The position numbers and the translations under genes are program-made. 64,000 bases of DNA from Tubulanus polymorphus (Eukaryota > Animalia > Nemertea), in contig NC_134036.1 in the NCBI RefSeq assembly GCF_964204645.1, forward strand, positions 1,736,001-1,800,000. Direction: 5' to 3'. Numbering within the stretch: the stretch's first letter is position 1; every line of letters begins with the position of its first letter. The notes below the pieces were generated by a model. The model was given only the letters and a program-made list of their open reading frames with translations. It did not search any database and had not been told where the DNA came from. Of this stretch, positions 28,701 to 63,681 are shown one piece after another.

Positions 28701-31700
28701 GCCCCCTGGTGACAATGACTAATTAAATTATCCCGCTACAATACTTTTCGTGTCCCGAATGGAGAAATGGAAACTGCTAGAAATCGAGGGGGGTCGGGGA
28801 TAATTAGAGCTTTCACTAATGAGAGAGGACAAACGTACTTATTATCAATACACAATCAGTCTACATATACTGCCCGTATTGATATACCTGATACCGACAG
28901 GTAACCATAGTAACGACTGCGTCGGCGCGCAATGGGGACTAGTTACAAATTTATTAGTTATGTAAATACGTAATTCGAGTATAAGCCAATCAGATCGACT
29001 GGTTTATCGGGTGTGATCAAACTGCTAGTGTTTGTCACGTCGATAAGACCATCTGGGTTAATGAAGGTATCAACACTTTCTTTTTGTTTTCGATGGAAAA
29101 ATGTGTTTATTTTCACATCCATTTTCCTCTCTGCATTTCATCAATAAGTGATCAATTTCATTCGGATATTTTCTCCAGGATAACGAAGTAATTTCTGCGC
29201 TAAGAAAGTATAATGAGTTTTAAAAGAATAAATAGATTTTACTAATCTTAATTTTGTTTGCACAAAAAATTATTGCAAATTAACATTGCGGTAGACTGTC
29301 ATCGTCTTAAATTTTATCGTTTTAATTTCCATTTATTTGCGAGGAGAGCGGGGCTGAAATAGCGTCGCACGAGTGTTGAATATTTAGAAAAACATTTCGA
29401 ATCATAGCCCCGATCTTAACCAAGTATCATCAGAAAAAAATTGTCACTTCATCTTGGGAAAATATCAACATAAATCTCTACCGACAGAAAGAATACATTT
29501 CATTTTGGGAAAGAAATGTTCGAAAACTGTTAATTTTTCAAAATATTAATTTTTACCTTATAAGCCCTGAACAGAAGGTAAAGTTCTCGTGGTTTTGCAT
29601 CCATTGGTAATCCGCTAACGAACAACGTTCGTACCTAAAAATAGACGAAATAAAAACTATATTTAGAAACAGATTTTAATCGAGCAATTAATTCCTAAAT
29701 TCAGACCGTATTAAGCTCATTATTCGGTTCTATAACCAATTTAACAACTTAAGACCAGCCTAAACTCATATTTTGTTCTATTACCAATCTAACAAGTTAA
29801 GACCAGTATAAGCTCATTTTGGTTCTATAACCAATCTAGTAACTTAAGACCAGTCTAAGCCATGTTGGTTCTAAAACCAATCTAACAAAATACAATCCCA
29901 TGGCCGGTCTTCAGTGAAAAATCATGTAACACAATCTAACGGTATAAACCTTCACGATAGTACAAGTCATTATCTTTATACCAGAGAGCATATATTCTAC
30001 TTCGGAAAATTTCATGAAAAATTCATACGAAATTGAAACTGCCTATTTCCCCCTTTCCCTCTCTTTCTCTTTCTCTCTCATCTAGTGTTGACGTGATAAT
30101 GTGGCAATGTCGTGATTTCTAAGAGCTTCTCCGACGTCGCCGGGGAGTCGTTAAATACGTTCGCAACTTTTCCGTATCGGGAATTAATTACTTCGTTGGA
30201 AATTATTTAATTAGAAATTGATGCGCGATTCATTTAAAATTTATGAATTCGTCGATTCATCTGCGCGTCGTTTAAGTAACGAAATATGGCTTTAGATCGT
30301 TATTTAATCAAACTTGCGACGTTCATAATTTCCTCGTCGAGAAAAATATCCGATCAATTCTGCCGTTCTGATTATTTTGATATTCGACGATGATTTTTCT
30401 TCGGTTCGGATTTTAGAAATTAAACACCCCGAATCGCATTAGCTAGCCCTAGCCAAGCAACTGGCCCTAAACTGCCCAAACCAACGGCTACCCCTTACGA
30501 GAACTCGTATAAAGCCAAGGCTAGTCAAAAACCCTACCATTTACTGGAAAGGGACCCCGCCTTTCGGAGACCTCAATCCCCATGGGCACTGACACCGATA
30601 TTCTAAACTGGTATTCAACTTTTAATTTACTTCACTTAAACGTTCATTATAACTCAAACCACATTGCATTGAGGATACTGATTATGATTCACGTATATAA
30701 AATATAAGATCCGTTCGATCCAAGCCATAAGGACGTGGCGCCATCTGCCAGCTACGTATTTAACTAACACTCGCCGTAAAACAAACATTCCGATACGTGC
30801 TCGGGGGGAAACGAACGACTCAGTCGCGCGGCCTAATTATATTTAATAATTCATCATATCGCTGTAGGTAACCACAACAATGGTCACGTCTTTCCGGTCG
30901 TCATAGGTAACGAGGGAGATTATCAGGTTTCCTAATAACGGGAAGTAGGCAGCGAAGAGATGTTGAGATGATGACTGATATAAAAGCAGCCAAGAGGTCG
31001 AACTAAGAATTCCGCGGCGAAGGGATCATCACGAATTCGCTGATCGTCAGATGTTACTGGAATGTACCAACTTAATAATACTAATAAATATCTTCTATAT
31101 GAAATTTTAAAAATAAAAAAAATAATCAACGTCTTGTATTGTCGTCACTTAATCGTACAATTTTCGAGTATCTTCGGTTTTCAGAAAAAGAAAATGTTCA
31201 TTTGTATTTTTTCCAACTCGCCGGTCATTTTACTAGATTTTTTAAACATCTACTTTATTCCAGACCTATTTCCAATCCGTTTCAATATATTTCGTCTGAA
31301 AATTGTAGTTCAGTTACCGAGAACTAAGAAATATTGTTTTCGGAATAACATTTGTCCAACTCGAACCGGGAATCTAACCTGAACGGCTCATTCATTATTC
31401 GTGACTAAGTAAGAACCGGATTAATTCGATTTAACCAGTCTTAACATAAACCAGGTTCAACACTGCCTTCATTACTTCGTTTTTCGAATGGCAAAATATG
31501 TCAGGTTTTCGCCGAGACTATTTTTAACTTTTTGAACAATAGCGGTGCTGGTTAACTTATACCCTACGACACTGATTCAACTGATCTCATGAGAGAGGAT
31601 GTTCCCACCAATCTAACCGTATACCCACCACCACACCCGTCCATCCAGCCGTTAAACAGCCGAGCACAATTTAAGACAATAGCTTATGCGTCATCGCTGA

Positions 31701-34700: not shown

Positions 34701-37700
34701 GATACCGAGCCTTTTGGATGAAATGAATACCTCCATAAATTCCCTTATGGCATCATCAAATTGTCCGGTGCCTCAATAGATATTCCTCTTTGACTTTTAG
34801 AAAGATGGCTGCCCGCATGATCCCCCTGTGACATCATCAAATTGATGCGAGATTATACAGAACGGTTTCATTTCTAAGATGGCTTCCACCAGAGATCCCA
34901 CTATGACGTCATAATAATGATGTAAAGCGATTTTTGATGGATCCACTTACGCCTAAGAACGGCTGCGATATATCCTGAATTTTGTAGGATTTATGGGACA
35001 ATAATTCGCCGTATGAACGTCATAATATCTCTGACTAGATCGGGGTACTTGATGCCATTTTATCCTCATTTAATCTATCTTAATATGATAGTAATCCCGG
35101 AGTAATATGGCAGGATTAATACGGGATTAAGCGACGTCAGCTGTGGTGTGCACCACATTTACCGAGGAGAGATGTCAAATTCACGAAACACGTATCGAAG
35201 TCGTTAAAGCTAAACTTTTGAAAATGATGGTGTATAGATTTGATGAGCATTTCAGCACTACTTCCAACCCGTGCAAGGAGATAGCCCTGGACCACTAGTT
35301 AATCATGTTTCCCCAAATTGACCCTTTGTTTATCAGTAATTTATGATGGTACCAACAATTTCAGTGACCGTAAGACCTCTTCAGTAAAAAAATAAAATAG
35401 CCCTGGACCACTTGCTATATCTGTATCCTCAAATGGACCCTTCGTTTATCAGTAATTAATGATGGCACCAACAATTTCAGTGACCGTAAGAACTCTTCAG
35501 TAAAAAAATAAAATAGCCCTTGACCACTAGCTATATCTGTTTCCTCAAATAGACCCTTCGTTTATCAGTTATTAATGACAGCACCAACAATTTCAGTGAC
35601 CGTAAGAACTCTTCAGTAAAAAAATTAAAGAACTCGTTTTGAAATTCACATAGGCTTCACATGCATTATATAAAAGTTGAGTTTTAAGCTTTTGAATGGA
35701 TTATTTCCGTTAAAATCGTCATTCAGGCAACTGGTACGAGCTTTAAAGGCTTTACTTCGCATAAGCTGAACCGATTATCTCTTAAATTAATGAATTCAAA
35801 CTCGAAAATATATTCTGAATTAATTCTTTCGCGGGCCCCCAGATTGTTGTCGGAGTCGCGACTCATTTGATATCAATTAAGGAATTGTTCATCTCTTTAA
35901 AATCCGACGTTTTAATCTACGACCGACTTTTAGCCGATGATATCGGGTCTCGTGAAGTGTGTAGGATACACGAATTAAAATTCAACCACACCGCAACCGC
36001 TGGAATTAATTTACAACCTGAATTATTCATGATATTTCACTTCTAGCATTTCGAAAGTCGCGGAAACGAATGACGCTGCATGTCTCGAGTCTGCTGGTTT
36101 TAATGCATCCGTTCTGCTGACGACTGTTTGCGAAAATCATAATATTATATATCAGCCTTGAAGTGTGTGGTGTGGACGATCAGTTATTGAAATCTGAGCT
36201 GATAAAATATTCAATGTCTGATGTCTGAAGTTCACTTTCAATTAGAAATGTCTCAGATGAAGCACTGAACACATGTGAAGTGTGGACGATCAGTTTTGAA
36301 AGTGCGCTGATAAAATGTCTAATATCTGGTGTTTGTAGTTCATTTTCAATTAGAAATGTCTCAGATGAAGCACTGAACACATGTGAAGTGTGGACGATCA
36401 GCTTTTGAAAGTTTGCTGTTAAAATGTCTAATATCTGGTGTTTGTAGTTCATTTTCAATTAGAAATGTCTCAGATGAAGCACTGAACACATGTGAAGTGT
36501 GGACGATCAGCTTTTGAAAGTTTGCTGTTAAAATGTCTAATATCTGGTGTTTGTAGTTCATTTTCAATTAGAAATGTCTCAGATGAAGCACTGAACACAT
36601 GTGAAGTGTGGACGATCAGTTTTTGAAAGTTTGCTGTTAAAATGTCTAATATCTGGTGTTTGTAGTTCATTTTCAATTAGAAATGTCTCAGATGAAGCAC
36701 TGAACACATGTGAAGTGTGGACGATCAGTTTTTGAAAGTGTGCTGATAAAATGTCTAATATCTGGTGTTTGTAGTTCATTTTCAATTAGAAATGTCTCAG
36801 ATGAAGCACTGAACACATGTGAAGTGTGGACGATCAGTTTTTGAAAGTGTGCTGATAAAATGTCTAATATCTGGTGTTTGTAGTTCATTTTCAATTAGAA
36901 ATGTCTCAGATGAAGCACTGAACACACGTGAAATTGATTCGTTGATTTTCGCGTCTTTTGATTTTGAACTCGGAAATCAGCGTAATTACGCAACATAGAT
37001 GGCGTTAATATCGCTATGTGATGATTGGACGGACAAGGGGAGTCAGACACACAGGTAGTTAAATGAGGTACTTGATGATTATGAAGAGGCCACTTAGAAC
37101 TCACGTGATGCTTCTATCTCAGCCGAGAGAGAGAGAGAGAGAGCAAGTGTTTCCGCTAAACGTGAAGTAAGACACACGAAATATCAAATAAGCCGTTATA
37201 AATCTTTTCAAACTAAACCAGTGATAATTCATGAGTTTCCCTCGAATATTGCTTTCTTCACGTTCCTCAGATTCTTTCGACCGTTCGAAAACCTTTGACC
37301 TTGAAAATACAATTGTCTAACCATATCTACAAATTGAAATCTCAATTGAAATCTACTAATTGTCGCTAAACGAAAGACTTCTGTGGATCAAAACGAGTTC
37401 TAAAAAGCATTTGACATTGAAAAATACCGTGTACATCGAATTCTAGGAACAATCGGTTTTTTTCTACGCTAAATGAAGAAACCCTTCGCAAACCGCAATG
37501 GATTTTTATCGATTTCTAAAAAGCGAACATACTATTGCCTTTAAATCCTGCACATACACGGCCATACCCTCGTTTTTATTGGCAACCGTCGTAATTATTG
37601 GCTTCTTATCACTCAAGTAACGCTCGATAATAGACTCTTAACGTGGGATTGTATCGACTTCTTAAAAGCGTTTGACTTTAGAAAACAAATAAGTCGAACT

Positions 37701-40699
37701 ACATAAGTAGTACAGAAATCCACGTAGATTGCGTCGCTCTCATACCATTTCTTCAGAAGTTTGCTGGGAATTCCGCGTATGATTTTTAAGATGCAAAATA
37801 ATTTCAATTGAAATCCAAAATGGCGGACATCAGCCAAATATGGACCATGTATTACGTCATCCGTTTTGAAACAAAAACAAAATTTTTATCTAATTGATTC
37901 TTCCGAACGAACGTAAACCTTAGAGTAATTACCTGATTACTCCAAGCATAAACCAACCCATTATCTCGTTGTACGTTAGCTGATATCTGAGCGCTTAGTC
38001 TGCGTGATTTGCGTTTAGTTTTCACCGAGAACCAGACACAAATAAATAAATTGATGCGTCCATTTCAGTAAATAGTGTAACATCTCGTAGTAAATTACAC
38101 TGATAAGAATTACTCAACAACGGAAGCACTTATCATCCGGCTTATCACGTCTCACGGATCGTAGATGTGTAAAACGCCGTTCGACTCTAGACAGGTAAGC
38201 AGTGATAAGAGAAAGACTAGTTAGAGAGAGTATCTCGCAGCCAGTGGTAAGAAGCCGAATAACGGCAGGATATTACGAGAAAGTGAGGTTATCGGTAACC
38301 ATTAACACCACTGCGAGGTGGGCGTCTTATCATCCCGTTGTACCCGTTGACTAACAACCCGTCAAACCGACTTCAAAAATGACGTAATTCATCTAAAAAT
38401 TCGATACAAGATCGCAACCGGTGGTTATAGGGGTTGGGCAGCAGGGAAGGTCGTTATTTAACTGACACGTGAAGGAAGTGCGTGTGTCATCTAAAACGTA
38501 GAAACATCGATATCTACTCTAGCAAAAAAACTATGAATACTCTCGGAATGTTTACACGTGGAAAACGTCCAATATATATATAAATTATATTATATATAAA
38601 TGGACAATATATTACATTAAACTACAATTGTAACTAACGAATCTCAGGGTCGGGTCTATGGCCCCAAAATAGGGCATATCTTAAAATTAATTACAAGGGC
38701 TCCAAATCAAGAAAGCTTATCGGAAAACGTAAACTAATTTTTGGAAATACAAAGTACAAAGTTATCAATTTAAAATTTTTTGGTATAGGTTTGATATTTT
38801 TCATATTTACGTAAAATTTCCAGGTTATTGTAAAGCAGCAATGGCAGTTCTAGGAATTGGGTGTGCCGCCAAAGAAACTCGCTGTTTCAAAGTCAACAAA
38901 ATATATGTATCAGTTGTTTGTCTCGCCATTTAACATCGTTAGCACGTCAGTAGTTTATTACGTGAAGGATGATTGTTTTCAAAGCCCGGCCAAGCTTCTT
39001 ATGGCGAATAAATCGATGATTTGAATTTTACTTTGAAATCTTTTTTTCGAATTTACGCCAGCCAGGGATAAACTCTTCTCTTGAACCCGAAGTCGAAATA
39101 GGATTATATGAAACCAATAATCTCAATCAAATCTCGATAATTGAGTCTTTGATGATTTGAAATATCGTAATCACTATTTCAGAATTAAATTAAATTCAAA
39201 TTCGTATGACGGGGATTTATTATTATGAAGTTTTGAAACTGATCTCTGGAAGTCGGATTTTGGGGGAGAGGATTGTGTCGTCTGTCAGTGTCGTAATAAT
39301 CGTAATCAGGATTAAAAGATAAATCGATTCGGAGGAAGATCAAACGAATTATCTAGCAAACTCTTAGTCTTAGTTCGAGCACCGTTACGTTAAGTCTCGA
39401 TAGGTCCCTGATCACAGGATGTTGTCCTCGGGGGACCGGCTCCGCTGCTACGTAAAGTCTAGGATAAACAGCTCCGCAGGGACCAACTCGAGTGAGTAGA
39501 GAGGAGCTCCGTAAAATGCGATTAGTTAGATAATTATTTGGTGAACGCTAATCCGGATTAATCTAATCTACTGACACGCGAGGTATATAGGCCTATTCTA
39601 TCACACAGACACAGACCAATAGGGGGGATGGCCTACTCTATCACACAGCCAAAAGGGGGGGGGTGGACTGCTCGCGGGGTATTCGCGCTACATAGCAAGA
39701 ACTGTATTGTTCATCTCTCCGATCGCACTTAATCAAGACCAGTAATATAACCGATCTAACTCATTCTAAACTCAATTTGGTTGCATAACCAATCTAACAA
39801 CTTAAGACCAGTCGAAGTTCATTTTGTAACAACTTAAGATCGGTCTAAGCTCATTTTGGTTTTACAACCAATCTAACAACTTAAGACCAGTCTCAGTACA
39901 TATTAGTTCTGTAGTCAATCTGACAAGTTAAGACCAATCTTGTAACTCAGACCAGTCTCACGACTTGCTTCAGTAAGACTGGATGCTGGTGTCGATCGTT
40001 ACGGAGAAGAAACTGCGTGTGAGTAGTTGTAACAATGAAGCAGTTTATCGGCTAGTAAGGCAAGCAGTAACGGCCACCTGGGGATTTGGAAACGTCAAAC
40101 GAGATGTCTGTTGTTGCGGTGGTCTTCGCATAAGTTTTCGTTACCGATGCACACGTTGGGTTTAGATTGTTCAGGGACTTTGAGACTGCAATCTACACCA
40201 CAGAGGTATATAATAATAATGAACCCGTTTGGATGACGTTTCGTTTTCAACTTGGTTCGGGTTGCCTATTGTTGCTGCTTTGGTCGATATTATCGCTATT
40301 GCTAGTGTTGCTGCTGCTGTTGTTGCTGCTGTTGCTGCTGCTGCTGTTGTTGTTGCTGCTGTTGCTGCTGCTGATGGTGGTACTAATGCTGTTGATGTAG
40401 CTGCAGCTGCTGCTGCTGCTGCGATGCTGCTGCTAGCAGTAAAACCCAATATTCATCTCGGCGCAAGTATTCCCAATATGGTCGTCTTAGAATCAGTTGA
40501 TTACTCAATGAACACCTGCGTTCCATCTCCCTCTGTGCTACACTGTGTTTGCGTGTACGTGGCAGCATCAATACTATCTGTAGCATCTGATCTATGCGCG
40601 ATGTCACTGCATCCAAGGCATGGATAACTTTACAGCCATCATGTCCCATTCCGACATTCTTCCGTCTTGTCGCAACATGAATAGCACAGACAGCAGCAT

Positions 40700-40762
<63 letters not shown>

Positions 40763-40838
40763 CATCAACAGCAGCAGACATATCAGCAGCAGCAGACATA
40801 TCATCATCAGCAGCAGCATCATCAGCAGCAGCAGACAT

Positions 40839-40934
<96 letters not shown>

Positions 40935-41772
40935 ACCGACAGTCAGAGCAGCAGCTGCTGTCGCCGCATTAACAGGACCAATAGCAGAAGCAAAGGCGTC
41001 ATCGATATAATTGAATTATTTTTCATTTCCTAAGAATTTTCATCCATAATCATAAAATTATCTAACGCGAATTGGAAATTCTAAATGTTCTAACCCTACT
41101 TGACTTGACTACATGCAAAACGCGTTCATCAACCAGAAATTCATTACTTCAATTCTTACCTGAAAAATACAAAGGAGAAAAGAAATTAAGTGAAAATGAA
41201 ATAAAAGAATTTCTTTCTATTTACCTGGAAGTAAAATATTCCAGTGTCAACCAAAAGATATCATAAGGTTAAAAGCGTTGAATCCTGGCGGTGACCAAAA
41301 ATATCTTCGTCTGCATCGTTGGGATGTAACGATAATGAAGTGAGTAGCGAAAAGCGGATCGTCTGAGAGTTTATAATAAAAAACAAGTTCTCAACTTCAA
41401 TACTATTCTCACAGTATCGGAAATTACAAAAAAAATCCAAACAACACTGAACGGGTTAACACTGAAACACCATTTGAATTATACACGTCCATCCCCTAGG
41501 TCCAATCGTCCCTTCTCTTCCCTGACACACGAGTTTCTGGAGTAGGTAAGAAGTCGATGTAATTGTCCCCAGTTACACGCAAGACGAATCGACCGCTTTT
41601 ACGTAAAAGGACCCGTCTTACGTTACATGAAGAAACCAATATCGGCGCACTTGACCGACATGAGGCAAAGCCATCAGTAATATGACTCGGGGGGGGGGGG
41701 ATGGCGAGGGGGGCTGCTTATACATCGCGGTATACAGTAACAGGTCTATTTACATCATGCGAGGGCTTTTGC

Positions 41773-41809
<37 letters not shown>

Positions 41810-44800
41810 GAACCACCATTATCAGGAGAGTCGGGTGAGACGCGGCAAATGGAAAATTTTCGATGTTCATGAAATTTGAGAATTTTCGAAATTAAATTGA
41901 TATTCACCGATATATCGAATACGCGATATTGAGTTAATGGGTGACTCGAATGTCACATGGTTATACAAAGGCACATAACGGCCGTTCCCAGACAGCAGAG
42001 GCGTTGACAGTTTTCGAAAAACCGATTTTTTATTTACGAGAAATAAAATGCTTATTCTCAGATATTTGGACCGGTCCAAAAGTTCGTTACGGCCTCACGT
42101 CCCAGAAGGAATGAAGGTGTCATTGTCAAATATTTGGCCTGAGACCAAAACGTAACGACCAAAAGTTCGTTACGTCCCAGAAGGAACGAAGGTATCAGGG
42201 AACAGGAAATGAATTAATGAGTAATTAATGAGTCAAAATCGAATCTTTTGCAACCTCTAGTTTATAGTGGGTTTTTGAGTTATCATCTATTCCGCATGTC
42301 GAGTCTACGATGATACAGTCTATAGTCGAATATGATGTAAAATATGACCAGGCTGGGCCTGAACGAACAAGGTATCGGACAACTATTATTTCTCAGGTAA
42401 CACAAGCGATATCATAGTTGTTATCAATTTGTCAATATGTGCTTGATCTATTTGCGTCTGCAAACAGGTTATTATGTTTGCAAGTGGACAAGGAACAAAC
42501 ACGACTCGAACCTCGATCATGACTTTATCGTATGATGGGGTGAAAACTTCTTGACTTCTTCGACGGCGGAATAAGAAGAAGAGACGATCGGCGAGATTAT
42601 TGTCGCAGTTAATAAGGATGTTTACACATAGCTTGGTCTGTGTGTGACAAACACTGTATTAGCATAAAGGTCTTTTCGAGTGTCGGCGTTGTGGTCTTTG
42701 GTTTGTGTCACTTAAATGTCGAAGCGTTTGTTTATAACCAGTTCGAATTCGTGTTTGTTCGGCAAATTTGCGCGCTTATGTCAAAGATGCAATTTGACGA
42801 TTGGTCATATATTCGGGCACCGGTAAATAAATAAATTTCCAGGTGGTTACATAAAAGTTTGACGTATTTACAGGAAAATACACCGTAAAAAACCCATTAA
42901 GTCAATAGTCGAATAAAATGCTGTAATGCTTGTAATGTGTCGACATGAATTAAGAAGTTCCACAATAGAATATTGTATGATAAAATAAATCAAAACGAAA
43001 GCACAACGTTTTGGCTGTTGACTCGCACAACTAACATCAGTCTTCTATAACCAATCTAACAACTTAAGACCAGTCTAAGCTCATCTTAGTTCTATAACCA
43101 ATCTAACAACTTAAGATCAGTCTAAGCTCATTTTGGGTTATATTACCAATCTAACAACTTTAGACCAGTCTAAGCTCATTTTAGTTCTATTACCAATCTA
43201 AAAACTTAAGACTAGTGTGAGCTCATTTTAGTTCTATTACCAATCTAACAACTTAAGACCAGTCTAAGCTCATTTTGGGTGCTAAAACCAATCTAACAAC
43301 TTAAGACCAGTCTAAGCTCATTTTGGGTTCTATAACCAATCTAACAACTTAAGACCAGTCTCTCCAGGTGTCATTTTAATAGATTTTATCATATAAAATT
43401 CTATTGTGGAACTTCTTGATTCGACCCATAAAGTGTTAAGTAACATCAGGGACAACTATAGGTCCAAAGGAGGAGGTGGCTCTATTTTTTTTTAATTCTC
43501 TTTTTTGTGGTTAAAATCAACTTGGCCCTTAGCTGTAAAATGCCAGTGTAATTCATGGCCATATCTACTCGAATTTGGGATGAGATTTGTATATAAATTA
43601 TGAGCCCGTTAAAAGGATAGTAATCATTAACGGAACTATTACCCGGCAGCCTGTAGCCCGTACGTACCGGTTACTCGGCAACTAAACTGGCGAACATTAA
43701 CGTCAACCTGTGGTAGTAAAGTGATGGATAGGGGGACACGTATCTGCAGCATCCGAGAGGATTACACAACCCGTCTGTAACCGAGCTACCTGCCTGCTGC
43801 AAAGCCAGCATCTAACCATCCATCAAACTTCCATCATCATCAGATGGTTCCTGGTCGATAAGAGCGTATCCGACCACGAATATAGAAAAAGACGAATTCT
43901 TTGCCTAGTTTAATCGGGTGTCCATATCAATGTTAAGTAATAACCACGACCATGAAAAATACCCTATTCACGCAATCAACCTTAGGGCAACCCCATCGTT
44001 AACCGGCCTGGATTCAACACCCCTTCGGACGTTTACCATTTGCAGTGTGATACGAGGACAATCAGTTTTTGAAAGTTGCGCTGATCAAATGTCCAATATC
44101 CGGTGTTTGTAGTTCATTTTCAATTAGAAATGTCTCAGGTGAAGCACTGAACACATGTGAAGTGTGGACGATCAGTTTTTGAAAGCGAGCTGATAAAATG
44201 TCTAATATCTGGTGTTTGTAGTTCATTTTCAATTAAAAATGTCTCAGGTGAAGCACTGAACACATGTGAAGTATGGACGATCATAAATTGCAAGTTCGTC
44301 AAGTGTCAAATATCAAGAGGGATTGCCGGGTTCCGACTATAGATTCATACATGCAACAATACTGACAAATAGCTATGGGAATCTACAATTGCTACAACGA
44401 CTATAACACGCAGTATATAGCGGTATAGAGGCCAAAAATAATTGGTTGATTATTATAACTATTGAGACAAATTAACCTGAATTGCGGCCCAACATATCAA
44501 AATATATGTATGCGCATGTTGATATATTCATAATGTGCTTGCCGGCGTATTGAATCTATTTAACCCTAATATCGCCTATTTATGTATTGTACGTCGGTAT
44601 TGTACGAACGGCTTTGTGAGCAACATGGACCACAATTTGTCAAAATGGATCAATTTGCGTCTATCAAAATGTGTGAATGAATGAATTAGTTGATGTAAAC
44701 ATAATGTATGGCATTGATAATGTTTTTATACACGTATCAACCAATATTTTCAGCCTTTGGGACAAGTTTTGAAGACAGCACGATCAGTTTTTGAAAGTGT

Positions 44801-50800: not shown

Positions 50801-53800
50801 ATTGCGGTTTACAAAAGTGACCATTGGCCGATTAGATGAAACAAGGTATCATTTTATTTTAGCCTAATCACCGCCTTTCTTTAATAACAGACTCGGAAAT
50901 TTTAGAAATTAACTGATTACAGATTGTATTGCATTTTACTACAAAAGTGACCAGGCCAGTGAGAAACAAGGTATCATTTTGTTGTGTCAATGTGTAAGAT
51001 TTCAAAGACTTCCTCGAATCCCAATAAAATTGAAGAAACCACCCAAGCAAAAAACACACAAAGGAAGTGGAATACTAATGATTTTTTTCGCACATTAAGA
51101 TCACACGCAGCGATCAACTCCTCGACGTTAGAGAGAACTAACGTAACTAGACAATGGAATTGCCGGTTACACCCAAACAAGGTTAAACGATCTGCTAGGG
51201 CGCGGTTGGTTTCTCCATTTGTGTTATGATTTGTGAAGGTATTTTGTGCCGAGGCGTGGAAACGATGTCGGCTATGACGGCACGATATCAGTATATATAT
51301 TTATAAACATTGTTGATTCAATTCGGTAACGAAAAAATTGACTATGAATTTATTTAGAAGGAACGCCTTGTTGCAAAGTTCACAGAATTGGAAACCTTTT
51401 TTCCGATTTTTATCTAGTTTTGTTAGTTCTAAAAGAATCAGTTGCCATCGAATATTACGTAAATGTATATCGAATATTACGTTATTAAGTAAACGGGAGG
51501 TTCGAATAGGGATTTCGATCAAGCGGCTTCTAAGTTCGTGAAAGAATGATTTTACAGGTCTTGAGATGAGTTTTTCTAAACTTTGCCGCAATTTCGTAAA
51601 ATGTCACGGACACAATTTGATATTTCGTTCAGTTCAACCTCAATTTTGATCTTTCTTCGGAAAATTTTTCAGAATACTTTTTAAGGATGGAATTCTTAAG
51701 GGACCTCGACATTGGATCCTACTTACTGGGTGGATCGCTATTGTCCTAATTAATTGTGAAATCTATCTTCAAGACAAACTTTGTTTCCGATATTTCAATA
51801 TTCTTATCTTCGGTATTCGCGTTGTTTTCCTAATACGATACACCATGACGACGACGACACTGCGTCGATCCGACCCGCGGGATTGTTACCGTCGTCGCCA
51901 ATAACGACCGTAAAATTCGCGTCGTCAAGGGAGACGAGATGAGCTGTTTAAACCTGGATGTAAAAGTCATTATCGCCGTAAGCGGTAAAGACGACTTTTA
52001 CGGAAAGCAGTCTTCTAATCCACTGATTACCTAAAACGTATAAACACCACGTCGCGGCACACGGTGTCCGCCCGAATACGGCCCCTAGGGGGCGCAGCGG
52101 GCGCGATGGGGCGGACTGATAATCCCCTCGGGGTCGCTGTAAGTACGGAGGCTATACTCGAGGGGCGTTTGGAAAAGTAGATAATGCTCGTTCGGTCGTG
52201 TAGACTGGCGCGCAGCTGAAAATGACTTCTCGCGAGTAATGCGCGGAAAAACTACACGTTTGTATTAGGAAATTAAGTAATTGGTTTTTGAAACGGAAAG
52301 CAGAGCCATCTGGTGTCGACGAAAGGAAATTAACAGCTACGGTTGGACAGACAAGATACACTCTCATGTTTTACCATGTCCTTTACTGTCTTCATGATCA
52401 AGCTTGGCAGCCCGGCTAAAAAAAACCTATATACCTTGTTTATCATTTCTGTTGGGCTCGTTTAAAAGTTGACTTCTCATTTCTGCTGAGTTTAAAAGTT
52501 GACCCGACCGGCTGCCTTTCTAACCTGTACATTACTTTTTTTTTAAATCATGATCAAGCTAACAATAACAACCCGACAGTTATAGAAATGAACTGATTAT
52601 AAATTCTATTGCTGATAACAAAAATGACCTCGCCAATACGTAGAAACAAGGTATCCATTCTTGTATAGCCTAATAAGCACGCAATAATGTATGTACAACC
52701 AATACCGTAATTAGCTACGCCTTAAGGCAGCCATCTTGAAAATGTTCACTCAAACGTGACCGAAATGTCTGGTGATTAGGCATGACATATGGAACTTGAG
52801 TAATACCTACAGGTCACCGACGACATCTTTGAAGGTCAGCGTTTACTTTACAAGTTTTCCTCTCGTTAATATGTATCAGATGACACGGTAAACAATTTTC
52901 TATGGCAGCCATCTTGAAATTCGACAAATTAGATTTGAACGTATTGATAATATATCATAACGATGTTGAACACTTTGATTTGATATTTATGTGATAACAA
53001 AACACAATTCGATATAATGTCACATGACAGCCATCTTGGGAAATGTCGACCGATATAATACGGCAGCAACCCTAAAACTTCTACGAATTAGATTTCACAC
53101 GAATAATACGTCACGTGATGGCAGCCATCTTGGAAATGTCGTCAGCAAATCTGTGTTTCGTAAAGGTCAAACGTTGAAACGATGCAGCGATTATATCATC
53201 GATATCAATTTCGAAAACAGACGAAACAAAAATGAATAATGTCATATGGCGGCCATCTTTATTATTATTATGACGACGCGAACGCGGCCATTTATCAATC
53301 AGTATTCGGAGTCTATCAGTCTAATAGCGCAACAGAGTAAAAACTATAAAGCGGGAATAAAGATTGATAACGACAATGAGAAAGAAGTTAATGGCATCGA
53401 AAGCGTTCCGTGTCACGAGAAGTTATCAGAATTATGATGGAACAGTGTGTGTGTGCTCAAACAGCACCGGGTAAAGATCATTCACTAACCAACAGAACCT
53501 GACTTAATTAATAAACCTACTGATTAGGAGCTGCTGTATCAGTCGGTTGGTGGTGTAGAGATCTATCCGTCATTATTAACTCTCATAACACCGAAAACGT
53601 GTTCGGCACCGAAACCAAAACGATATCGATACAAAGTTCACATCGGTCGTTTTACATCGTGGGATGCCACGAAAAAAATGGCCGCCTCCATAAATCCCTC
53701 TATGACCATAATCATAGTTATATAAACCCTTCTAAAACGATGGCTACCTCCATAAAACCCCCTATGATATCATGGTTATATAAACCCTTCTAAAACGATG

Positions 53801-56800
53801 GCTACCTCCATAAAACCCCCTATGATATCATGGTTATATAAACCCTTCTAAAACGATGACTGCCTCCATAAAACCCCCTATGATATCATGGTTATATAAA
53901 CCCTTCTAAAACGATGGCTACCTCCATAAAACCCCCTATGATATCATGGTTATATAAACCCTTCTAAAACGATGGCTACCTCCATAAAACCCCCTATGAT
54001 ATCATGGTTATATAAACCCTTCTAAAACGATGGCTACCTCCATAAAACCCCCTATGATATCATGGTTATATAAACCCTTCTAAAACGATGGCTACCTCCA
54101 TAAAACCCCCTATGATATCATGGTTATATAAACCCTTCTAAAACGATGGCTACCTCCATAAAACCCCCTATGATATCATGGTTATATAAACCCTTCTAAA
54201 ACGATGGCTACCTCCATAAAACCCCCTATGATATCATGGTAATATAAACCCTTCTTAAACGATGACTGCCTCCATAAAACCCCTACGATATCATGGTTAT
54301 ATAAACCCTTCTACAACGATGGCTACCTCCATAAAAACCCCTATGATATCATGGTTATATAAACTCTTCTAAAACGATGGCTACCTCCATAAAACCCCCT
54401 ATGATATCATGGTTATATAAACTCTTCTAAAACGATGGCTACCTCCATAAATCCCCCTATGATATCATTATGGTACTACAGCCCCTCTAAAAAGATGGCT
54501 ACCTCCATAAAACCCTCTATGATATCATGGTTATATAAACTCTTCTAAAACGATGGCTACCTCCATAAATCCCCCTATGATATCATTATGGTACTACAGG
54601 CCCCTCTAAAAGGATGACTGCCTCCATAAATCCCCCTATGATATAATCATGGAACTACAGGCCCCTCTAAAAAGATGGCTGCCTGCATAAATCCCCCTAT
54701 GATCTGATCTGATAGTTTAAGTTCTGACACTAAATGAAATATATCATACTATCCACAACCACAGATTGTAATTTAGATTTAACTCAAGATCTTGAATCAG
54801 TCCATGATTATCGTTGGAACCGGATGCTGTTCCAATCACCACTGCTCACGTGATCCTTTTATCATTCTGGCTGAATGTTCGGCGCGAGGAAATTGTAAAG
54901 GCCTACGCGTTCTCGTTCAAAGAGTCGGCTTTCTGGAAATCGAGTCCAGAAATAACCTTTCGGAACCGATTATTAATCTAAAATTCTCCGTCCTTTCTAT
55001 TTTCTATTTACGTTTTTCTTAAGGACTCGAAAACAGCGGAAAGCTTTCAATTTGCAACGGTATCGATCGGTAATCTGCGCAGCAACAACAACATACGAGC
55101 GCTTTTCAAAAAGGAACCACCGCTGGGTCGTTTTCTTTTTAGGTCCCACCGTCGATCCGGTGATTAGTCATAACCGAGGACGACGACGACCTTCACCTTC
55201 GCGTCGCGTATGAATACCGACCGAGTCCGCTCCATCGATTTAACACAACCGCGTAATTATAACGTCCGCCGAATCCGCATACCCGGAAAATCGATTTGTA
55301 GGTTCGTTGACGAGATATTAATTAATACTCCTGCGTTAATCATACTCCGCGAGTTAATTAATCGTGCCGTATAGGTAAAGACTAGAGACAGAACCGGATT
55401 TTACTTACAGCAGCGGCGGGAGGAGTACAATGGCAGACGATCAAAGCAGACGCTGATGATGATGTGACTAATCGATTTTTGTTTAAAAAGTTTTCGTCAA
55501 CCGATTCTGTTGTTGTCTGGTTGCGTAGTTCGTGCGTTACCGTCGCTGGGGTCAACGAGTGCGTGGCGACTGGGAGAAGATTAATTTGTTGACGAAAGAT
55601 GTACCAAAAATAAGCAGTACAACGCAGGCACTAGTGGTGGCCCAAAAAATTGCCTGGGCGTACTGAAGTCCTAGACGGAGGATAAAGAGAGGAGGGAGAC
55701 GGGAGGGAAACGAATACATTTTGACAAAACATGCTCAAAAAAGTATAGCGGAAATAAGATGGGATTTCGAATTCTAATGGAAGACCTAGATGAAGAGAAA
55801 AGGGAGGAGGAGGAGGGAACGAATCTTGCTGACATAAAATGTACCGCTGAAGTACAATAAGAGTAGAGTAGGCTATAATGGCCTTGTCATACTTCGCATG
55901 AAACAAAGTGAGCGATAAATATAATGAGCCTTGTTAACAAGAAAGCACAAAGATTTTGAATAAAAAAATAAGACAAAGACATATACACATATAGACTGAA
56001 CGCGAGACGAAGACCCTGGGGTAAACATGATAACCGCATTCACATGTACACCCGAACGGCAAAATCTACGTCTCGGTTTAATTAGGTTGGAATTAGGTTA
56101 ATTAGGTCGAATCGACTGTAATCACGTCTTGGAAAACTATTTAAAGGGTCATACCTAAGTAGCATACTTCATCCGAAAAAAAATCAGTCCAGATTGCTCA
56201 GTAAAAAGCTTTAGCCTGATCTTAGCCCAAGTCGTGTCGGTTTAATTGGCGATTCTGGACCCAAAATTAATGTGGTTCCAGGGTTTGATTGCCATCCTCC
56301 GAAGCTCAGGTGGCCAACACAAGCCCTAGCCGCAGACCCTTCATTGGTCTATCACATTGCACGAGATTTCTTGGATGGACAGGTTGCCGCTTAGCGGTCA
56401 CTAGTCTATGTATTGAGCCAATCAGTTGCGATGTTTTTCACCGCTAGGTTTGTCAACACCACGCATCGAAACCTGGCAAGCGACGGTGGTCTGATAGGGA
56501 TATGGATCCATCACATTGAGTCTATAACAGTATTTTAGCGATCCCGGTTTTAGAAAGTGAAAATCAATACTTATAGCTCCAATGAGGCAGTTCGTACAGT
56601 CAGTTTAGGGTATCATTGGTAGCTCGAGTAACCACGTAATCAGAAACCACGACTGTGCGCATAACAGCTGTCGTCGTAAAAAATCACCAGGTGGCGACAC
56701 CGGACACTTTGTATATCCGCTTTCATCGCATTGAATTATATAGGCCTATAGCGATTCAAATGCTTAGGTGAAAACTAGATATGAACAGAATAAATTAGGA

Positions 56801-59800
56801 AATGTGGAACCCATCAAAATAGAAGGGCTTAAGCTGAGAAAAAAAGACTGCGGAAGTGACTGCGGAAGTGCGAGACTTAAGATATCGCCTTGCGGGACTC
56901 CATTAACTGCATTTGCGGCATTTCTGCAGAAATTCGGCAGAAGATTTATTGCCCACTAAGGCCTACATTGATACTGGGAGCTACTGAATTTTTTTCAACT
57001 TAGGGTAGCTTCCTCTACATGTCATAGGAAAGTAAAATGAGTGATTTAAGATAACACCTTGTGGTACACCAGCTGTAACTTGCGGTTAACTAGCTAGCAC
57101 AGTCTTTAATTCACCTGGGGCTAACAACGTTGAGGGTTTAAAGTCACCACCTTGTGGTACACCAGCTGTAACTTGCGGTTAACTAGCTAGCGCAGTCTTT
57201 AATTCACCTGGGGCTAACAACGTTGAGGGTTTAAAGTCACCACCTTGTGGTACACCACCCGTAACTTGCAGTCGACTAGCTAGTATAGTGAATGCTTCAC
57301 CCGGGGCTAACAACGTTGAGGGTTTAAGGATACCACCTTGTGGTACACCTGTTTTACAATATTCGCTCGTCAATTCAGCCAAATTTATTCCACTAGATGA
57401 GCACTATTTGAAGTGATTTCTATGATTCACCGGCTTTACGGCTGGTCACTTGGCTTTTAAACAAACAAACAAACAAACAAATCGAAATTGAAAATGTGTC
57501 CGCATTTTACTGAATATATTTGTTTTTCGGACTAGAACCGCTTAAACCAGAGATTGTGTCAAGTTGTGAACTAGGACGTCGAAACACTGAACACCTCGTT
57601 GAGTCACCACCACCACCACCACTGATATTTGACTAGGGGGTTACCACACGCAGACGACCTTTCCTTTTATCGTCCATAGTGTAAATATTTATTTCGCGTC
57701 AATAAAGTTTTATTGTATTGTACTTTCGTGTAATTGAATTTTGTTAACAACCGACTGAAAGGTCGTAAACCGAGTCGACCACACCCACCAGAGAATTGTG
57801 CATGTGACACAAATGAATATGGTATTTTAGCATTTATTCACACATCACAAGTCTACAGTTTTCGATTCTGTGATTTCTGGTTTTGACTTAGGACCACCTA
57901 GAGACCAATGTTGCATCTGGGGTGATGACCAGCAGAGCAGCCCATAAAATCCAGGATCCACCCCTGGACAAAGTGTTTTAATAATTGTTACATACATGTA
58001 ATCCTCGCCTGGGCTCAGTTTTATAGACTGGTATTACCTTTAACCCGGGGGCTAACTCAATTCATTATCAATTGAGTTAGCCCCCGGTTTAAAGGTAATA
58101 CCAGTCTATAAAACTGGGCCCCGCATATGAAGCATATAAACAAAACGGTTTGGGGCCTGACGATGATTTGCATATCCTTCGGTCAAATATGTCGCCGATT
58201 TACATAAACTTTCATTAAAACGACAAATAAAGATGTTACCCTCTTTCATGAGCACCGAGAACAAATATGGCGACCACACATAACAAAATCGATTCCATAC
58301 GAAGATTTCAAAATCAGTGATTTATAAAACATTAGACAAATACAAGAGACACAAATGTGACGGATGAAGGTTTATTGCCAGCTGTCGGTTTACTGATGAC
58401 AGCTGATCTATAAGGCTCTCACGTTTCGGCCAATGTCATCTGAAGTTCGTATTAAGTGTTTACGAATTTCTCTCAGCCATTTGCGGCCATTGTTGTCCGT
58501 CAAGTCGAGCGAGAACCAACACGCGTTAAATGTTCGCTTTTGATTTTCACATTCATGCGACATGTTTCTGAGTCACAGGTGGTTCGTTCTCAAGTTAATT
58601 AGAGCTTAAATTTACCTCCGCACGAGTTGGCACTGAATGAATTATATTTGAAAAGTAATTTTGAGGGGATTTCTCAACTACATGAGTAATGGACAATGGT
58701 TTCTATAAGGGAAGATGTTTTTGTAACCACCGTCAGGGAAGAAGACCTCCCCGCTTTTGCAAAGGATCTGTATGCCAACGGTAGTTTTAATGCCATCTTA
58801 GTTCCATAATCTTACAACTTAAAACCCATTCCTACGACCTGAGACCACAATTGAAATTCTTTAGTCACGCCTGATGGATCTTGAATAAATCGGGCTCAAT
58901 GTACAGGGTAGACTTTTAAGCTTAGCAAAAATGAGAAACAAGGCATCTTTCTTTTAGCCTAATCCTACAAATGTAAGACCACTTTTACGATTTAAAACCC
59001 CTATCAGACTTCTATAGTCTTGAATGAGGGATCCTTAATTAGTTGGGCATTGGAGTCAAATGATTAATCCAAGGTTGGGCTCACAGTGTGACCTTTGTTT
59101 TGATTGAACTTTCTTTATCTTTATTTCAATGTCTTTCGTCTTATCAACCTCAACTCGCGTCATTCACTGGTCAACGTGATAATGATGTCTGGGGTCAAAT
59201 ATATACAATACATGATAAGATAGAATTGCAATTCTGAATCAAATAATGTTGTATGGTATAGGTTTTATGCCTCAAATATTATGGTTATCCTGGATTAATA
59301 AACGAAGGAAAGAGAGCTCGCATGGATGATAAACTTTCCTGGTCGCTGACCATGTCCAACTACCCAAAGCCAGACCAGTTGTATACCACATGCATAAAGC
59401 TCATAAAGTCTAATGACATCTTGGTCAAATAATAATAATCATATAACATGTCTTTATCGAACTCCTTTTAAACAAACTAATGTTTCTTTTTCATTAAAAA
59501 AATATCTATCGGGGAAAGGACATTAGGCAAGCCATGAGGATGCACTGCATATTGCCTCATTTTTGATTAAGTATATCGTTTAATAGCCAACCAAGCAACT
59601 GTGGCCTAGAATATGCATATCTTGGTCCAATAGCCTTTTTCTAAAACAAGTCGGGACTGTAGGAACTGGATCGTGGACTACGCAGACAAATCCGATCCCG
59701 GCGAACCACCTAGGAATCAATCTTGGTCCAATAGCCTATCTACAGTTAAGTCAGAACGGCAGTACCTGGATCCTGGACTGCGTATACAAATCTGATCCGT

Positions 59801-62800: not shown

Positions 62801-63663
62801 GCACCGGTGGGGGATTTTTTGATATTTTAATTCATTGACGTTGTTCTTTACCTCGTAAATAATAGTTATCGACAAGGATTAAAAATGGCCACCTTCTCAA
62901 AATTGATATTTCCATCTACTTATTCGTAATAATGAATAACAATTTAGCCATTCTTAAGACTAATTAACTCAAAAGTTGCGGCAACAACAGCAGCATATGT
63001 ATTTGTAAATCCTGGTTTAACACCAGGGATATATGCTACACTAATACCGCTTCGTAAACAAAATGGATAGAGGGCTCATCTTGCATTTGTTAAAGACAAG
63101 CTTCGGAAACTTAACCTTTGGGTCAAGTTTTATAATTTCAATTTTGCCACTTCAAACTTGGATTTTTTTGTGTTCACTATTAGTTAACACAAAAAAATCT
63201 GCTGTATTAATTGAGCAATCTTGTTTTGGGATGTCTAACCATGAAGAAATTCATGAACAAATAATTAACTAATTGTCATGAATTAACGTCGGTCATTAAC
63301 GTATATGGTGTAACACCGGTAGCTAATTAACTGAGCAATTAATGTTAATTACCTAATGAGCATTAATTAACATTAGCTACTACGGAAAACAATAATTAAA
63401 CAATAGACGAAATAACTAATATTCAAGCAAATAAATTAACAAGAAAAAGGTTTTTTGTAATGATCATAATAATAATAATAATAATAATAATTAAAAAGCG
63501 TTATCTCTACCTGATCCTCAATATCCGTAGTTCCGTTCGTGCCATTATTCTCACACAAGGTGGCGTTACTGACAGTGGTGCCGGCTGTGTTGGCAGTGTT
63601 GGGGATGTGGTATGGTGGGTACGTGCACGGGCGCTTTGCAGGTGGGTATGGTGCACCACTTAC
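10702..63663 (-). CDS. cpo: Couch potato / MEC-8 / RBPMS-family two-RRM RNA-binding protein; multi-exon, 5'-partial (start codon upstream of window)
   Basis: Exons with GT-AG boundaries and compatible phases: 63663-63511, 29634-29557, 27605-27552, 24693-24631, 23363-23222, 20661-20513, 14878-14580, 12374-12305, 11741-11631, 10761-10702. The join gives ...[93 protein letters not shown], the diagnostic cpo/RBPMS RRM1, followed by a His/Pro/Ala linker and RRM2 ([11 protein letters not shown]...VAFVEFA...[12 protein letters not shown]). Confidence 0.96.
11299..11620. repeat. 32-bp minisatellite, ~10 copies, next to the last donor site
   Basis: Unit GTGAACCTCTCCATCCCCTGTTACAACTACAC. Confidence 0.95.
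11631..11741 (-). CDS. cpo: cpo RRM2 C-terminal exon, 111 nt, [14 protein letters not shown]...[13 protein letters not shown]
   Basis: AAACAG acceptor, CCG|GTACGT donor; [10 protein letters not shown] motif of MEC-8-type RRM2. Confidence 0.93.
12305..12374 (-). CDS. cpo: cpo RRM2 exon, 70 nt, (R)[23 protein letters not shown]
   Basis: AACAG acceptor, GCT|GTAAGT donor, phase 2 to 0; RNP1-like PVAFVEF. Confidence 0.95.
14580..14878 (-). CDS. cpo: cpo exon, linker plus RRM2 start ([11 protein letters not shown]...[24 protein letters not shown]), 299 nt, ends in phase 2
   Basis: TGTCTTTGTAG acceptor, CG|GTAAGT donor; RNP2-like TLFVANI. Confidence 0.95.
15090..15560. repeat. Degenerate tandem repeat (~184-bp higher-order unit built from ~60-bp subunits)
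   Basis: GAGAGGACA.CTTCAGATGATGAAGGCCGAAGGACTGATTCCAATCCAATG occurs twice; AGATGCCTCTAG...GGCTGAGGAA recurs. Confidence 0.8.
17310..17339 (-). CDS. cpo: Candidate 30-nt microexon, [10 protein letters not shown]
   Basis: TTGTTTTCCGTTGATAG acceptor, CAG|GTACAT donor, phase 0-0; composition like the adjacent His/Pro/Ser/Gln linker. Confidence 0.55.
18998..19072 (-). CDS. cpo: Candidate cassette exon, 75 nt, [25 protein letters not shown]
   Basis: Pyrimidine-rich tract ending TAATTTCAG; AAT|GTAAGA donor; phase 0-0, stop-free; TGCATG about 76 nt downstream. Confidence 0.7.
20513..20661 (-). CDS. cpo: cpo linker exon, 149 nt, (Q)[18 protein letters not shown]...TQVPTMR
   Basis: TGTATTGTAG acceptor (TAG-AAG tandem), AGG|GTAAGT donor, phase 1 to 0; FFP..PEAW..P motif typical of the family. 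Confidence 0.93.
22427..22527 (-). CDS. cpo: Candidate alternative terminal (or stop-containing) exon, coding part: (H)[32 protein letters not shown]
   Basis: TTTATATCCACGCAG acceptor; open for 33 codons in exactly the phase (1) left by the upstream exon; followed by CAC-rich, UTR-like sequence, three Pumilio elements and AATAAA at 20805-20800. Confidence 0.6.
22930..23190. repeat. ~134-bp local duplication
   Basis: TTTTC..TTCGTTGGACCTGTT...GGGACAGGGATA...CACG..TAATCGATG occurs twice. Confidence 0.65.
23222..23363 (-). CDS. cpo: cpo exon, RRM1 C-terminus plus linker start ([23 protein letters not shown]...HPLAG), 142 nt, ends in phase 1
   Basis: TTTTCAG acceptor, C|GTAAGT donor; family motif RFDP...[11 protein letters not shown]. 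Confidence 0.97.
24375..24490. repeat. Single degenerate 109-bp family monomer
   Basis: GAAATGTCTAATGTCTGGTGTTTGTGGTTCATGTTCAATTAAAAATGTCCCAAGTGAAGCACTG. Confidence 0.8.
24631..24693 (-). CDS. cpo: cpo RRM1 exon (RNP1/alpha2), 63 nt, [21 protein letters not shown]
   Basis: TTTCAG acceptor, CAG|GTAAGC donor; RNP1-like PVGFVTF. Confidence 0.97.
27552..27605 (-). CDS. cpo: cpo RRM1 exon, variant B, canonical ([18 protein letters not shown]), 54 nt
   Basis: TTTTTTCAG acceptor, TCG|GTAAGT donor; canonical family sequence GYEGSL.K.T. Confidence 0.96.
28272..28325 (-). CDS. cpo: Duplicated RRM1 exon, variant A ([18 protein letters not shown]), predicted mutually exclusive with 27552-27605
   Basis: TTGTTATTTTCAG acceptor, GCA|GTGAGT donor, 54 nt, phase 0-0; 11/18 aa and 37/54 nt identical to the canonical exon, including synonymous third-position changes. 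Confidence 0.88.
28348..28712. promoter_or_regulatory. Five co-oriented CTCF-like motifs (CGCCCCCTRS) upstream of duplicated exon A
   Basis: At 28348, 28418, 28561, 28623 and 28700; resemble the reverse complement of the CTCF core CCASYAGRKGGCR. Confidence 0.5.
29557..29634 (-). CDS. cpo: cpo RRM1 exon (RNP2/beta1-alpha1), 78 nt, [26 protein letters not shown]; absent from the ORF track
   Basis: TTTTAG acceptor, AAG|GTAAAA donor; translation matches the canonical cpo/RBPMS RRM start. Confidence 0.97.
29700..29890. repeat. 47-bp repeat family, ~4 copies
   Basis: ACCAATCTAACAA.TTAAGACCAG units, as at 43043-43362. Confidence 0.88.
32860..33125. repeat. 109-bp satellite family, ~2.5 copies
   Basis: Same unit and orientation as 36165-36930. 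Confidence 0.9.
35281..35625. repeat. 116-bp tandem repeat, 3 copies
   Basis: ATAGCCCT.GACCACT at 35281, 35397, 35513. Confidence 0.92.
36165..36930. repeat. 109-bp satellite array (~7 copies) of a dispersed family
   Basis: Unit ...GTGTGGACGATCAGTTTTTGAAAGTGTGCTGATAAAATGTCTAATATCTGGTGTTTGTAGTTCATTTTCAATTAGAAATGTCTCAGATGAAGCACTGAACACATGTGAA; the ORF-track ORFs here recur every 109 bp. Confidence 0.97.
39735..39960. repeat. 47-bp repeat family, ~5 degenerate copies
   Basis: ACCAATCTAACAACTTAAGACCAGTC units. Confidence 0.85.
40303..40437. repeat. (GCT/GTT)n trinucleotide tract
   Basis: Directly visible in the sequence. Confidence 0.95.
40691..40960. repeat. Interrupted (CAG)n tract including (CAG)19 and (CAG)28; reads (CUG)n in the cpo pre-mRNA
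   Basis: Pure runs at 40703-40759 and 40847-40930. Confidence 0.97.
41154..41215 (-). promoter_or_regulatory. Intronic recursive splice site (ratchet point) CAG|GTAAGA
   Basis: About 50 nt of AG-free, pyrimidine-rich sequence (TTCTTTTATTTCATTTTCACTTAATTTCTTTTCTCCTTTGTATTTTTCAG) joined directly to GTAAGA; no coding exon follows. Confidence 0.75.
42947..43422. mobile_element. MITE-like element: ~40-bp terminal inverted repeats enclosing a 47-48-bp tandem array (~7 copies)
   Basis: Left GAATTAAGAAGTTCCACAATAGAATATTGTATGATAAAAT is the near-perfect reverse complement of right ATTTTATCATATAAAATTCTATTGTGGAACTTCTTGATTC; internal unit TTCTATAACCAATCTAACAACTTAAGACCAGTCTAAGCTCATTTTAG. Confidence 0.75.
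44050..44285. repeat. 109-bp satellite family, ~2 copies
   Basis: Same unit and orientation. Confidence 0.92.
44780..45223. repeat. 109-bp satellite family, ~4 copies
   Basis: Same unit and orientation. Confidence 0.94.
48027..48240. repeat. 60-bp tandem repeat, ~3.5 copies
   Basis: TAATT.TTACTGAA at 48031, 48091, 48151, 48211. Confidence 0.92.
49918..50155. mobile_element. Nested MITE-like hairpin elements with GGGCCCAGTT-type ends
   Basis: Outer arms GGCCCGGTTTTATAGACCGGTGTTAACTTAAACC / GGTTTAAGTTAATACCAGTCTATAAAATAAGACC; inner arms CCAGTTCCACAGT / ACTGTGGAACTGG. Confidence 0.7.
50640..50985. repeat. ~127-bp tandem repeat, ~3 copies (related copy at ~52530-52675)
   Basis: GAAACAAGGTATCATTTT recurs at ~50711, ~50838 and ~50964. 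Confidence 0.85.
52025..52050 (-). promoter_or_regulatory. Weaker candidate ratchet point TAG|GTAATC
   Basis: GGTGTTTATACGTTTTAG|GTAATC; lies almost exactly one third of the way along the 33.9-kb intron. Confidence 0.35.
53677..54703. repeat. 58-bp satellite array (~17 copies); degenerate relatives at ~11790-12290 and ~34440-34920
   Basis: Unit CATGGTTATATAAACCCTTCTAAAACGATGGCTACCTCCATAAAACCCCCTATGATAT. Confidence 0.97.
57055..57349. repeat. 93-bp tandem repeat, 3 copies
   Basis: CACCTTGTGGTACACC at 57055, 57148, 57241, 57334. Confidence 0.93.
58011..58121. mobile_element. Palindromic MITE-like element (~52-bp arms, 7-nt loop)
   Basis: GGGCTCAGTTTTATAGACTGGTATTACCTTTAACCCGGGGGCTAACTCAATT-cattatc-AATTGAGTTAGCCCCCGGTTTAAAGGTAATACCAGTCTATAAAACTGGGCCC; same family as the outer element at 49918. 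Confidence 0.85.
63511..63663 (-). CDS. cpo: cpo N-terminal coding exon, 153 nt ([12 protein letters not shown]...DIEDQ), phase 0-0
   Basis: Branch-like CACTAAT plus TGTTTTTGCAG acceptor; CAG|GTAGAG donor; 51 open codons ending in the acidic DIEDQ that precedes VRTLF in this family. Confidence 0.85.
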
Positions 63664-63681
63664 CTGCAAAAACAATTAGTG
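63658..63681 (-). promoter_or_regulatory. Recursive-splice-type junction CAG|GTAAGT at the start of the 153-nt exon
   Basis: Minus strand reads CACTAATTGTTTTTGCAG|GTAAGT: an acceptor directly followed by a perfect donor consensus. Confidence 0.65.

Follow-up and report, generated by a model that had tools for sequence, protein, structure and literature searches.

Recursive splicing is an established process in flies and vertebrates. In Drosophila, zero-nucleotide ratchet points are known from genes such as Ubx, kuz, osp, fz, Bx, and cpo (Hatton 1998; Burnette 2005; Duff 2015; Pai 2018; Joseph 2018/2021), and consensus ratchet points in Drosophila number more than 500 (PMC8605326). A collection of 197 fly ratchet points displays a prominent pyrimidine tract, with TT at positions -5/-6 in 99.5%, and most branch points used in fly recursive splicing map between -36 and -21; one intron of Drosophila couch potato (cpo) is removed recursively by way of two ratchet points (Duff et al., bioRxiv 10.1101/006163). 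Recursive segments in flies average 9.1 kb (PMC6110457), and fly ratchet points are reported to require a short (~50 nt) cryptic RS-exon that is closed by a weaker donor (Joseph et al., PMC8605326). For nemerteans, the literature searched contains no report of recursive splicing, only two passing mentions of the group together with molluscs.

The DNA analysed here (the window) is a stretch of 64,000 nucleotides from the nemertean Tubulanus polymorphus (NCBI RefSeq assembly GCF_964204645.1, contig NC_134036.1, positions 1,736,001 to 1,800,000). Its minus strand carries a member of the RBPMS/MEC-8/couch-potato (cpo) family. The gene is single-copy, with no paralogue in the 268-Mb genome. Protein comparisons were made exon by exon, with no joined exon model. 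Searched singly, exon 29634-29557 matches MEC-8, RBPMS, and RBPMS2 chains with E values of 1e-10 to 9e-10, and exon 23363-23223 matches RBPMS, RBPMS2, and MEC-8 with E values of 3e-8 to 1e-4; the matches are RRMs of solved structure, from human (RBPMS, RBPMS2) and C. elegans (MEC-8). The host-gene exons display the RRM family signature of RBPMS, MEC-8, and Couch potato, and further exons 3' of 29557 encode, for example, GYEGSLLKV.. and PVGFVTFSS... Exons for a second RRM follow downstream (Table I), and with two RRMs the host gene would presumably resemble MEC-8.

The first-pass annotation had described a long intron (63510..29635), and its coordinates and its length of 33,876 nt are correct; the intron is GT..AG on the minus strand. 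The intron begins at a weak donor, CAG|GTAGAG (score 1.9), and ends at the acceptor tttttag| (score 7.7). From the reading frame and the splice signals we infer that 63511-63663 is an exon and that it is spliced onto 29634. An exhaustive representative search for protein relatives of this 51-aa exon returned one spurious repeat protein, and a word search returned none. When 100 kb was searched for open frames with strong donors, no convincing additional upstream exons emerged. Rfam and tRNA scans for nested RNAs were both empty, and all intron ORFs of at least 110 aa derive from trinucleotide repeats, namely the long (TGC)n and (CAG)n arrays listed in Table I. The kilobase that bears these arrays is the most GC-rich of the intron (50%). 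Satellite arrays with units of 109, 47, 58, and 93 nt also occur in the intron, the last of these holding the middling AGGT sites 57115 and 57208.

Splice sites were scored with simple weight matrices, using generic metazoan frequencies and not trained on this species. On this scale, the acceptor at 41160 (10.7) is the best among 1,721 AG dinucleotides on the sense strand of the intron, and 41159 is the sole donor scoring at least 6 among 2,038 GT dinucleotides on that strand. The best acceptor and the single strong donor of the intron share one bond, 41160|41159. All six real cpo acceptors of the host gene score below 41160 (1.1 to 7.7), and the real donors of the gene range from 1.9 to 7.2. 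The intron contains 109 AGGT tetranucleotides, or one per 311 nt on average, where 122 are expected from composition. With all 109 scored, the combined score of 41160|41159 is 14.0 and that of the runner-up 2.6; the bond is also the highest-scoring AG|GT in the whole window on both strands.

The junction reads ...cacttaatttcttttctcctttgtatttttcag|GTAAGAATTG, i.e., CAG|GTAAGA. The AG-free pyrimidine tract, which had been put at ~50 nt, measures 51 nt and is 92% pyrimidine from -26 to -3, with T at both -5 and -6 (...gtatttttcag|) as is typical of fly ratchet points. The site unites a strong acceptor with a strong GTAAG-type donor, the combination expected of a ratchet point. It is a sense-strand site, with the predicted donor of the intron 22.4 kb away and the predicted acceptor 11.5 kb away. 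As first noted, no coding exon stands behind 41159, the three frames stopping at codons 17, 1, and 3. The 401 nt around the junction are single-copy in the genome, and the site is therefore not repeat-borne.

Table I. Positions of the host-gene exons, the candidate junctions, and the repeats (window coordinates unless marked as contig coordinates)
Feature	Position	Strand	Remarks
Second-RRM exons	11616-14860	minus	Downstream of the RBPMS-type RRM
Downstream exon, first RRM1 exon	29557..29634	minus	26 aa; matches MEC-8/RBPMS/RBPMS2
Host intron	29635..63510	minus	GT..AG, 33,876 nt; precedes the first RRM exon
Upstream exon (predicted)	63511..63663	minus	153 nt; open through 51 codons, in the frame of the RRM exon
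Acceptor half of candidate ratchet point	41160..41212	minus	51-nt AG-free, pyrimidine-rich tract ending in CAG
Candidate branch points (yUnAy)	41186..41202	minus	A at -27, -32, -38, -43
Donor half, GTAAGA	41154..41159	minus	Full donor score 7.0; the first step would recreate CAG|GTAAGA
Possible 60-nt cryptic RS-exon (41159..41100) plus donor	41094..41159	minus	Weak donor caa|GTAGGG; in-frame stop
Weak AG|GT, ttccag|GTAAAT	41219..41230	minus	65 nt upstream; acceptor 0.7, total 2.2
TTTTAG|GTAATC	52025..52037	minus	Exists, single-copy; judged a chance AGGT
Ratchet-like ctttttag|GTAAGT	contig 1830084-1830279	minus (host-gene strand)	GTAAGT donors at +96 and +196
Long (TGC)n	40309-40434		230-850 nt downstream of 41160, together with (CAG)n
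(CAG)n, ~81 copies	40691-40932		As above
109-nt satellite unit	36170-36932, 44056-44283, 44780-45223		Three arrays
47-nt satellite unit	29712-29888, 39795-39940, 43043-43361		Three arrays
58-nt satellite unit	53678-54703		17.5 copies
93-nt satellite unit	57055-57349		3.2 copies

The anatomy of 41160|41159 is best explained by a ratchet point of the Drosophila type, through which the 33.9-kb intron would leave in two steps and not three; the probability of this reading is put at roughly 55%. In the first step, the weak donor 63511|63510 (CAG|GTAGAG) would pair with 41160, the strongest acceptor of the intron. A branch-point A at about -27 to -43, followed by the 24-nt pyrimidine tract, would serve this reaction, and a 22,351-nt lariat would be released. 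Ligation would recreate, at the new junction, the donor CAG|GTAAGA, which is much stronger than the host donor (score 7.0 vs. 1.9). The rebuilt donor would then pair with the acceptor at 29635, releasing an 11,525-nt lariat. The final mRNA junction would be identical to that of one-step splicing, and 52031 would take no part. The coupling of a weak authentic donor to a strong rebuilt one suggests a role for the site in which the donor is "upgraded" midway across a long intron. We infer the use of 41160|41159 as a splice site from these signals, and the site is to be regarded as a well-characterised candidate, not as a demonstration.

The acceptor at 41160 shares with Drosophila ratchet points its strong pyrimidine tract, its TT at -5/-6, its branch-like motifs in the appropriate range (-27 to -43), and a CAG set against a GTAAG-type donor. 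Like them, too, it is a sense-strand site in an intron of more than 30 kb, with no coding sequence after the junction. The host gene is orthologous to Drosophila cpo, a likeness at the level of the gene. In contrast to the fly examples, the host is a nemertean and thus a spiralian, its genome lacks hundreds of consensus ratchet sites, and 41160 is a candidate site. A further difference from fly ratchet points is that no clear downstream donor defines an RS-exon after 41160 (the best lies at +60 and scores 1.9). The two segments implied are 22.35 and 11.5 kb, compared with the fly mean of 9.1 kb (PMC6110457).

A strong acceptor and a strong donor may also come to share a bond without function, a good tract and CAG happening to adjoin GTAAGA at a place that the spliceosome ignores or uses as noise. 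Such a chance juxtaposition is considered unlikely. When the intron was simulated 300 times with a second-order Markov model, no run reached a score of 14 and four reached 10; composition alone predicts 2.5e-4 sites at or above 14 per intron. Across both strands of the 268-Mb genome, however, the composition model predicts ~4 sites of this strength, so that the scan-wide significance of 41160, which was picked out by a scan over many windows, is modest. Genome-wide motif counts also favor chance. The motif TTTTTYAGGTAAG has 69 matches vs. 100 for its reversed control, and Y10NYAGGTRAGT has 7 vs. 15 for its control; because the controls are at least as frequent, the genome displays no class-wide excess of ratchet-type motifs. 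That no downstream RS-exon donor stands out is likewise in keeping with a fortuitous site. Beyond the low expectation per intron, a fortuitous origin is opposed by the location of 41160 in a long intron, on its sense strand, in the one member of the gene family with fly precedent, and by two more sense-strand AG|GTAAGT junctions in and around the host gene where the antisense strand has none. In addition, with an authentic donor this weak, an unused site of such strength would act as a dangerous decoy.

In score, 41160|41159 ranks top among all 69 TTTTTYAG|GTAAG sites in the genome. Approximately 24 of the 69 fall in three repeat families, and ~45 are unique. An extended pyrimidine tract (-22..-9) is present at 12 of these ~45 unique sites, where ~2 would be expected, and at 8 of the 12 all three frames encounter stops within ~30 codons downstream. 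This suggests that the extended-tract sites are a small set of real acceptor-plus-donor junctions, either ratchets or untranslated exons that start with GTAAG.

It is similarly improbable that 41160|41159 is the edge of an unannotated exon instead of a zero-length ratchet. An exon starting at 41159 could be a 12-nt in-frame microexon (gaa|GTAATG), a 60-nt cryptic or poison exon that contains a stop, or an alternative last exon. Alternatively, 41159 could serve as the donor of a 65-nt frameshifting exon (41224..41160), for which ttccag|GTAAAT is the nearest acceptor, or an internal first exon could end at 41160. Weak signals for such exons are present: an acceptor at 41225 (0.7) and donors at +12 (-0.2) and +60 (1.9), as well as the GC-rich trinucleotide repeats 230-850 nt downstream. 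Exons of this kind are also the means by which recursive sites of flies and vertebrates are recognised (PMC8605326). However, the partner splice sites are no better than random; caa|GTAGGG at +60, the best donor within 200 nt past 41159, lies at or below the 75th-90th percentile of random 150-nt windows. An exon that ends at 41160, whether 65-nt internal or first, leaves the 51-nt AG-free pyrimidine tract and CAG unexplained, and one that begins at 41159 leaves unexplained the strong donor at its start. The reading frames end early and have no known protein relatives.

Like cryptic or poison pseudoexons, 41160 presents a strong, isolated splice signal deep in an intron; unlike these, in which acceptor and donor lie apart, it has both on one bond, with partner sites at chance level. 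It differs from expressed RS-exons in that no credible donor follows to close a frame-preserving exon, a likeness that belongs instead to exon 63663-63511.

The first-pass annotation had proposed recursive splicing at two junctions that divide the intron into three near-equal steps of ~11 kb. One candidate ratchet point, 41160, survives on sequence, and the second, 52031|52030, is unsupported. The weaker junction TTTTAG|GTAATC does exist there, but it is indistinct from its background: where 41160 leads the scoring of every intronic AG|GT, 52031 has a total of -3.2 and ranks 11th of 109. All six real cpo acceptors outscore its acceptor half (-3.4), and its donor, GTAATC, scores 2.1. The stretch upstream is 58% pyrimidine, GC-rich, and interrupted by purines, with a single branch-like motif, at -11, outside the usual range. 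Neither half has the strength expected of a ratchet point. The lengths given for the three pieces (11,480, 10,871, and 11,525 nt) are arithmetically correct. Within the 22.35-kb first segment, however, nine AGGT score equal to or above 52031, and the chance that one of nine halves the segment as evenly as seen is ~22%; because an even split arises this readily, the three near-equal steps rest on selection by position. Neither sequence nor position statistics support 52031|52030 as a ratchet point. A three-step model in which 52031 and 41160 both act as ratchet points, at ~11 kb per step, is hence very improbable on the acceptor, donor, tract, rank, and spacing just described, despite the TT at -5/-6 of 52031, the nearness of ~11-kb segments to the 9.1 kb that recursive segments average in flies (PMC6110457), and the two evenly spaced ratchet points of fly kuz (PMC8605326).

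The two-step reading at 41160 gains context from other AG|GT junctions in and around the gene. Over 184 kb, comprising the window and its flanks, three sense-strand AG|GT with good donors reach totals of at least 9.4, namely 41160 (14.0), 63664 (10.4), and a site 30,279 nt past the window end (9.4); the antisense strand over the same 184 kb has no AG|GT with a good donor at that level. The junction at 63664 forms the start of the upstream exon. This exon (63663-63511; 153 nt, frame-preserving) opens with CAG|GTAAGT, a donor scoring 8.7, and closes at the weak CAG|GTAGAG (1.9), in which it resembles Ubx mI/mII and vertebrate RS-exons (Sibley 2015; Blazquez 2018, PMC6224609). In RS-exons of this layout, competition between the donors decides inclusion vs. 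skipping (PMC8605326). By such competition, exon 63663-63511 should often be skipped. The site 30.3 kb past the window end appears ratchet-like, with potential RS-exon partners (Table I).

Given these two further sense-strand AG|GTAAGT, which may belong to the same transcription unit, the recursive step at 41160 may be a link in a longer chain. It is tempting to speculate that recursive splicing of the long intron before the cpo/RBPMS RRM exons is common to the nemertean and Drosophila, by protostome descent or by convergence, with a chain leading from the site 30.3 kb past the window to the RS-exon at 63663 and on to the ratchet at 41160, which would make this the first spiralian case of recursive splicing; this broader proposal is distinctly doubtful. 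If 41160 is used, it would show recursive splicing in Spiralia, in the nemertean orthologue of a gene, cpo, that is recursively spliced in flies. The locus would then be one at which to ask whether recursive sites are ancient or have evolved repeatedly in the same long neural genes.

Some AG|GT junctions in this genome are carried by repeats. A dispersed short element ends in ...AAATTCCCTGACTTTTCCCTTTTTTCCAG|GTAAGTGGCCACCCTG, i.e., in a ready-made acceptor-plus-donor junction. The element pattern CAGGTAAGTGGN{0,2}CACC has 118 matches genome-wide and none in the reversed control. Copies are alike over ~250-300 nt upstream of the junction, and the similarity ends ~19 nt past AG|GT. An inverted CAGGGTGG.. 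~175 nt upstream in one copy suggests that the element may be a MITE. Its ends account for 3-4 of the 7 Y10NYAGGTRAGT matches, and the first 17 nt of exon 63511-63663 match the end of the element (window 63647-63666). A second dispersed repeat, with ...ccagttcggccatttttcag|GTAAGCAAACGTC, contributes 17 of the 69 TTTTTYAGGTAAG matches and has a poor upstream pyrimidine tract.
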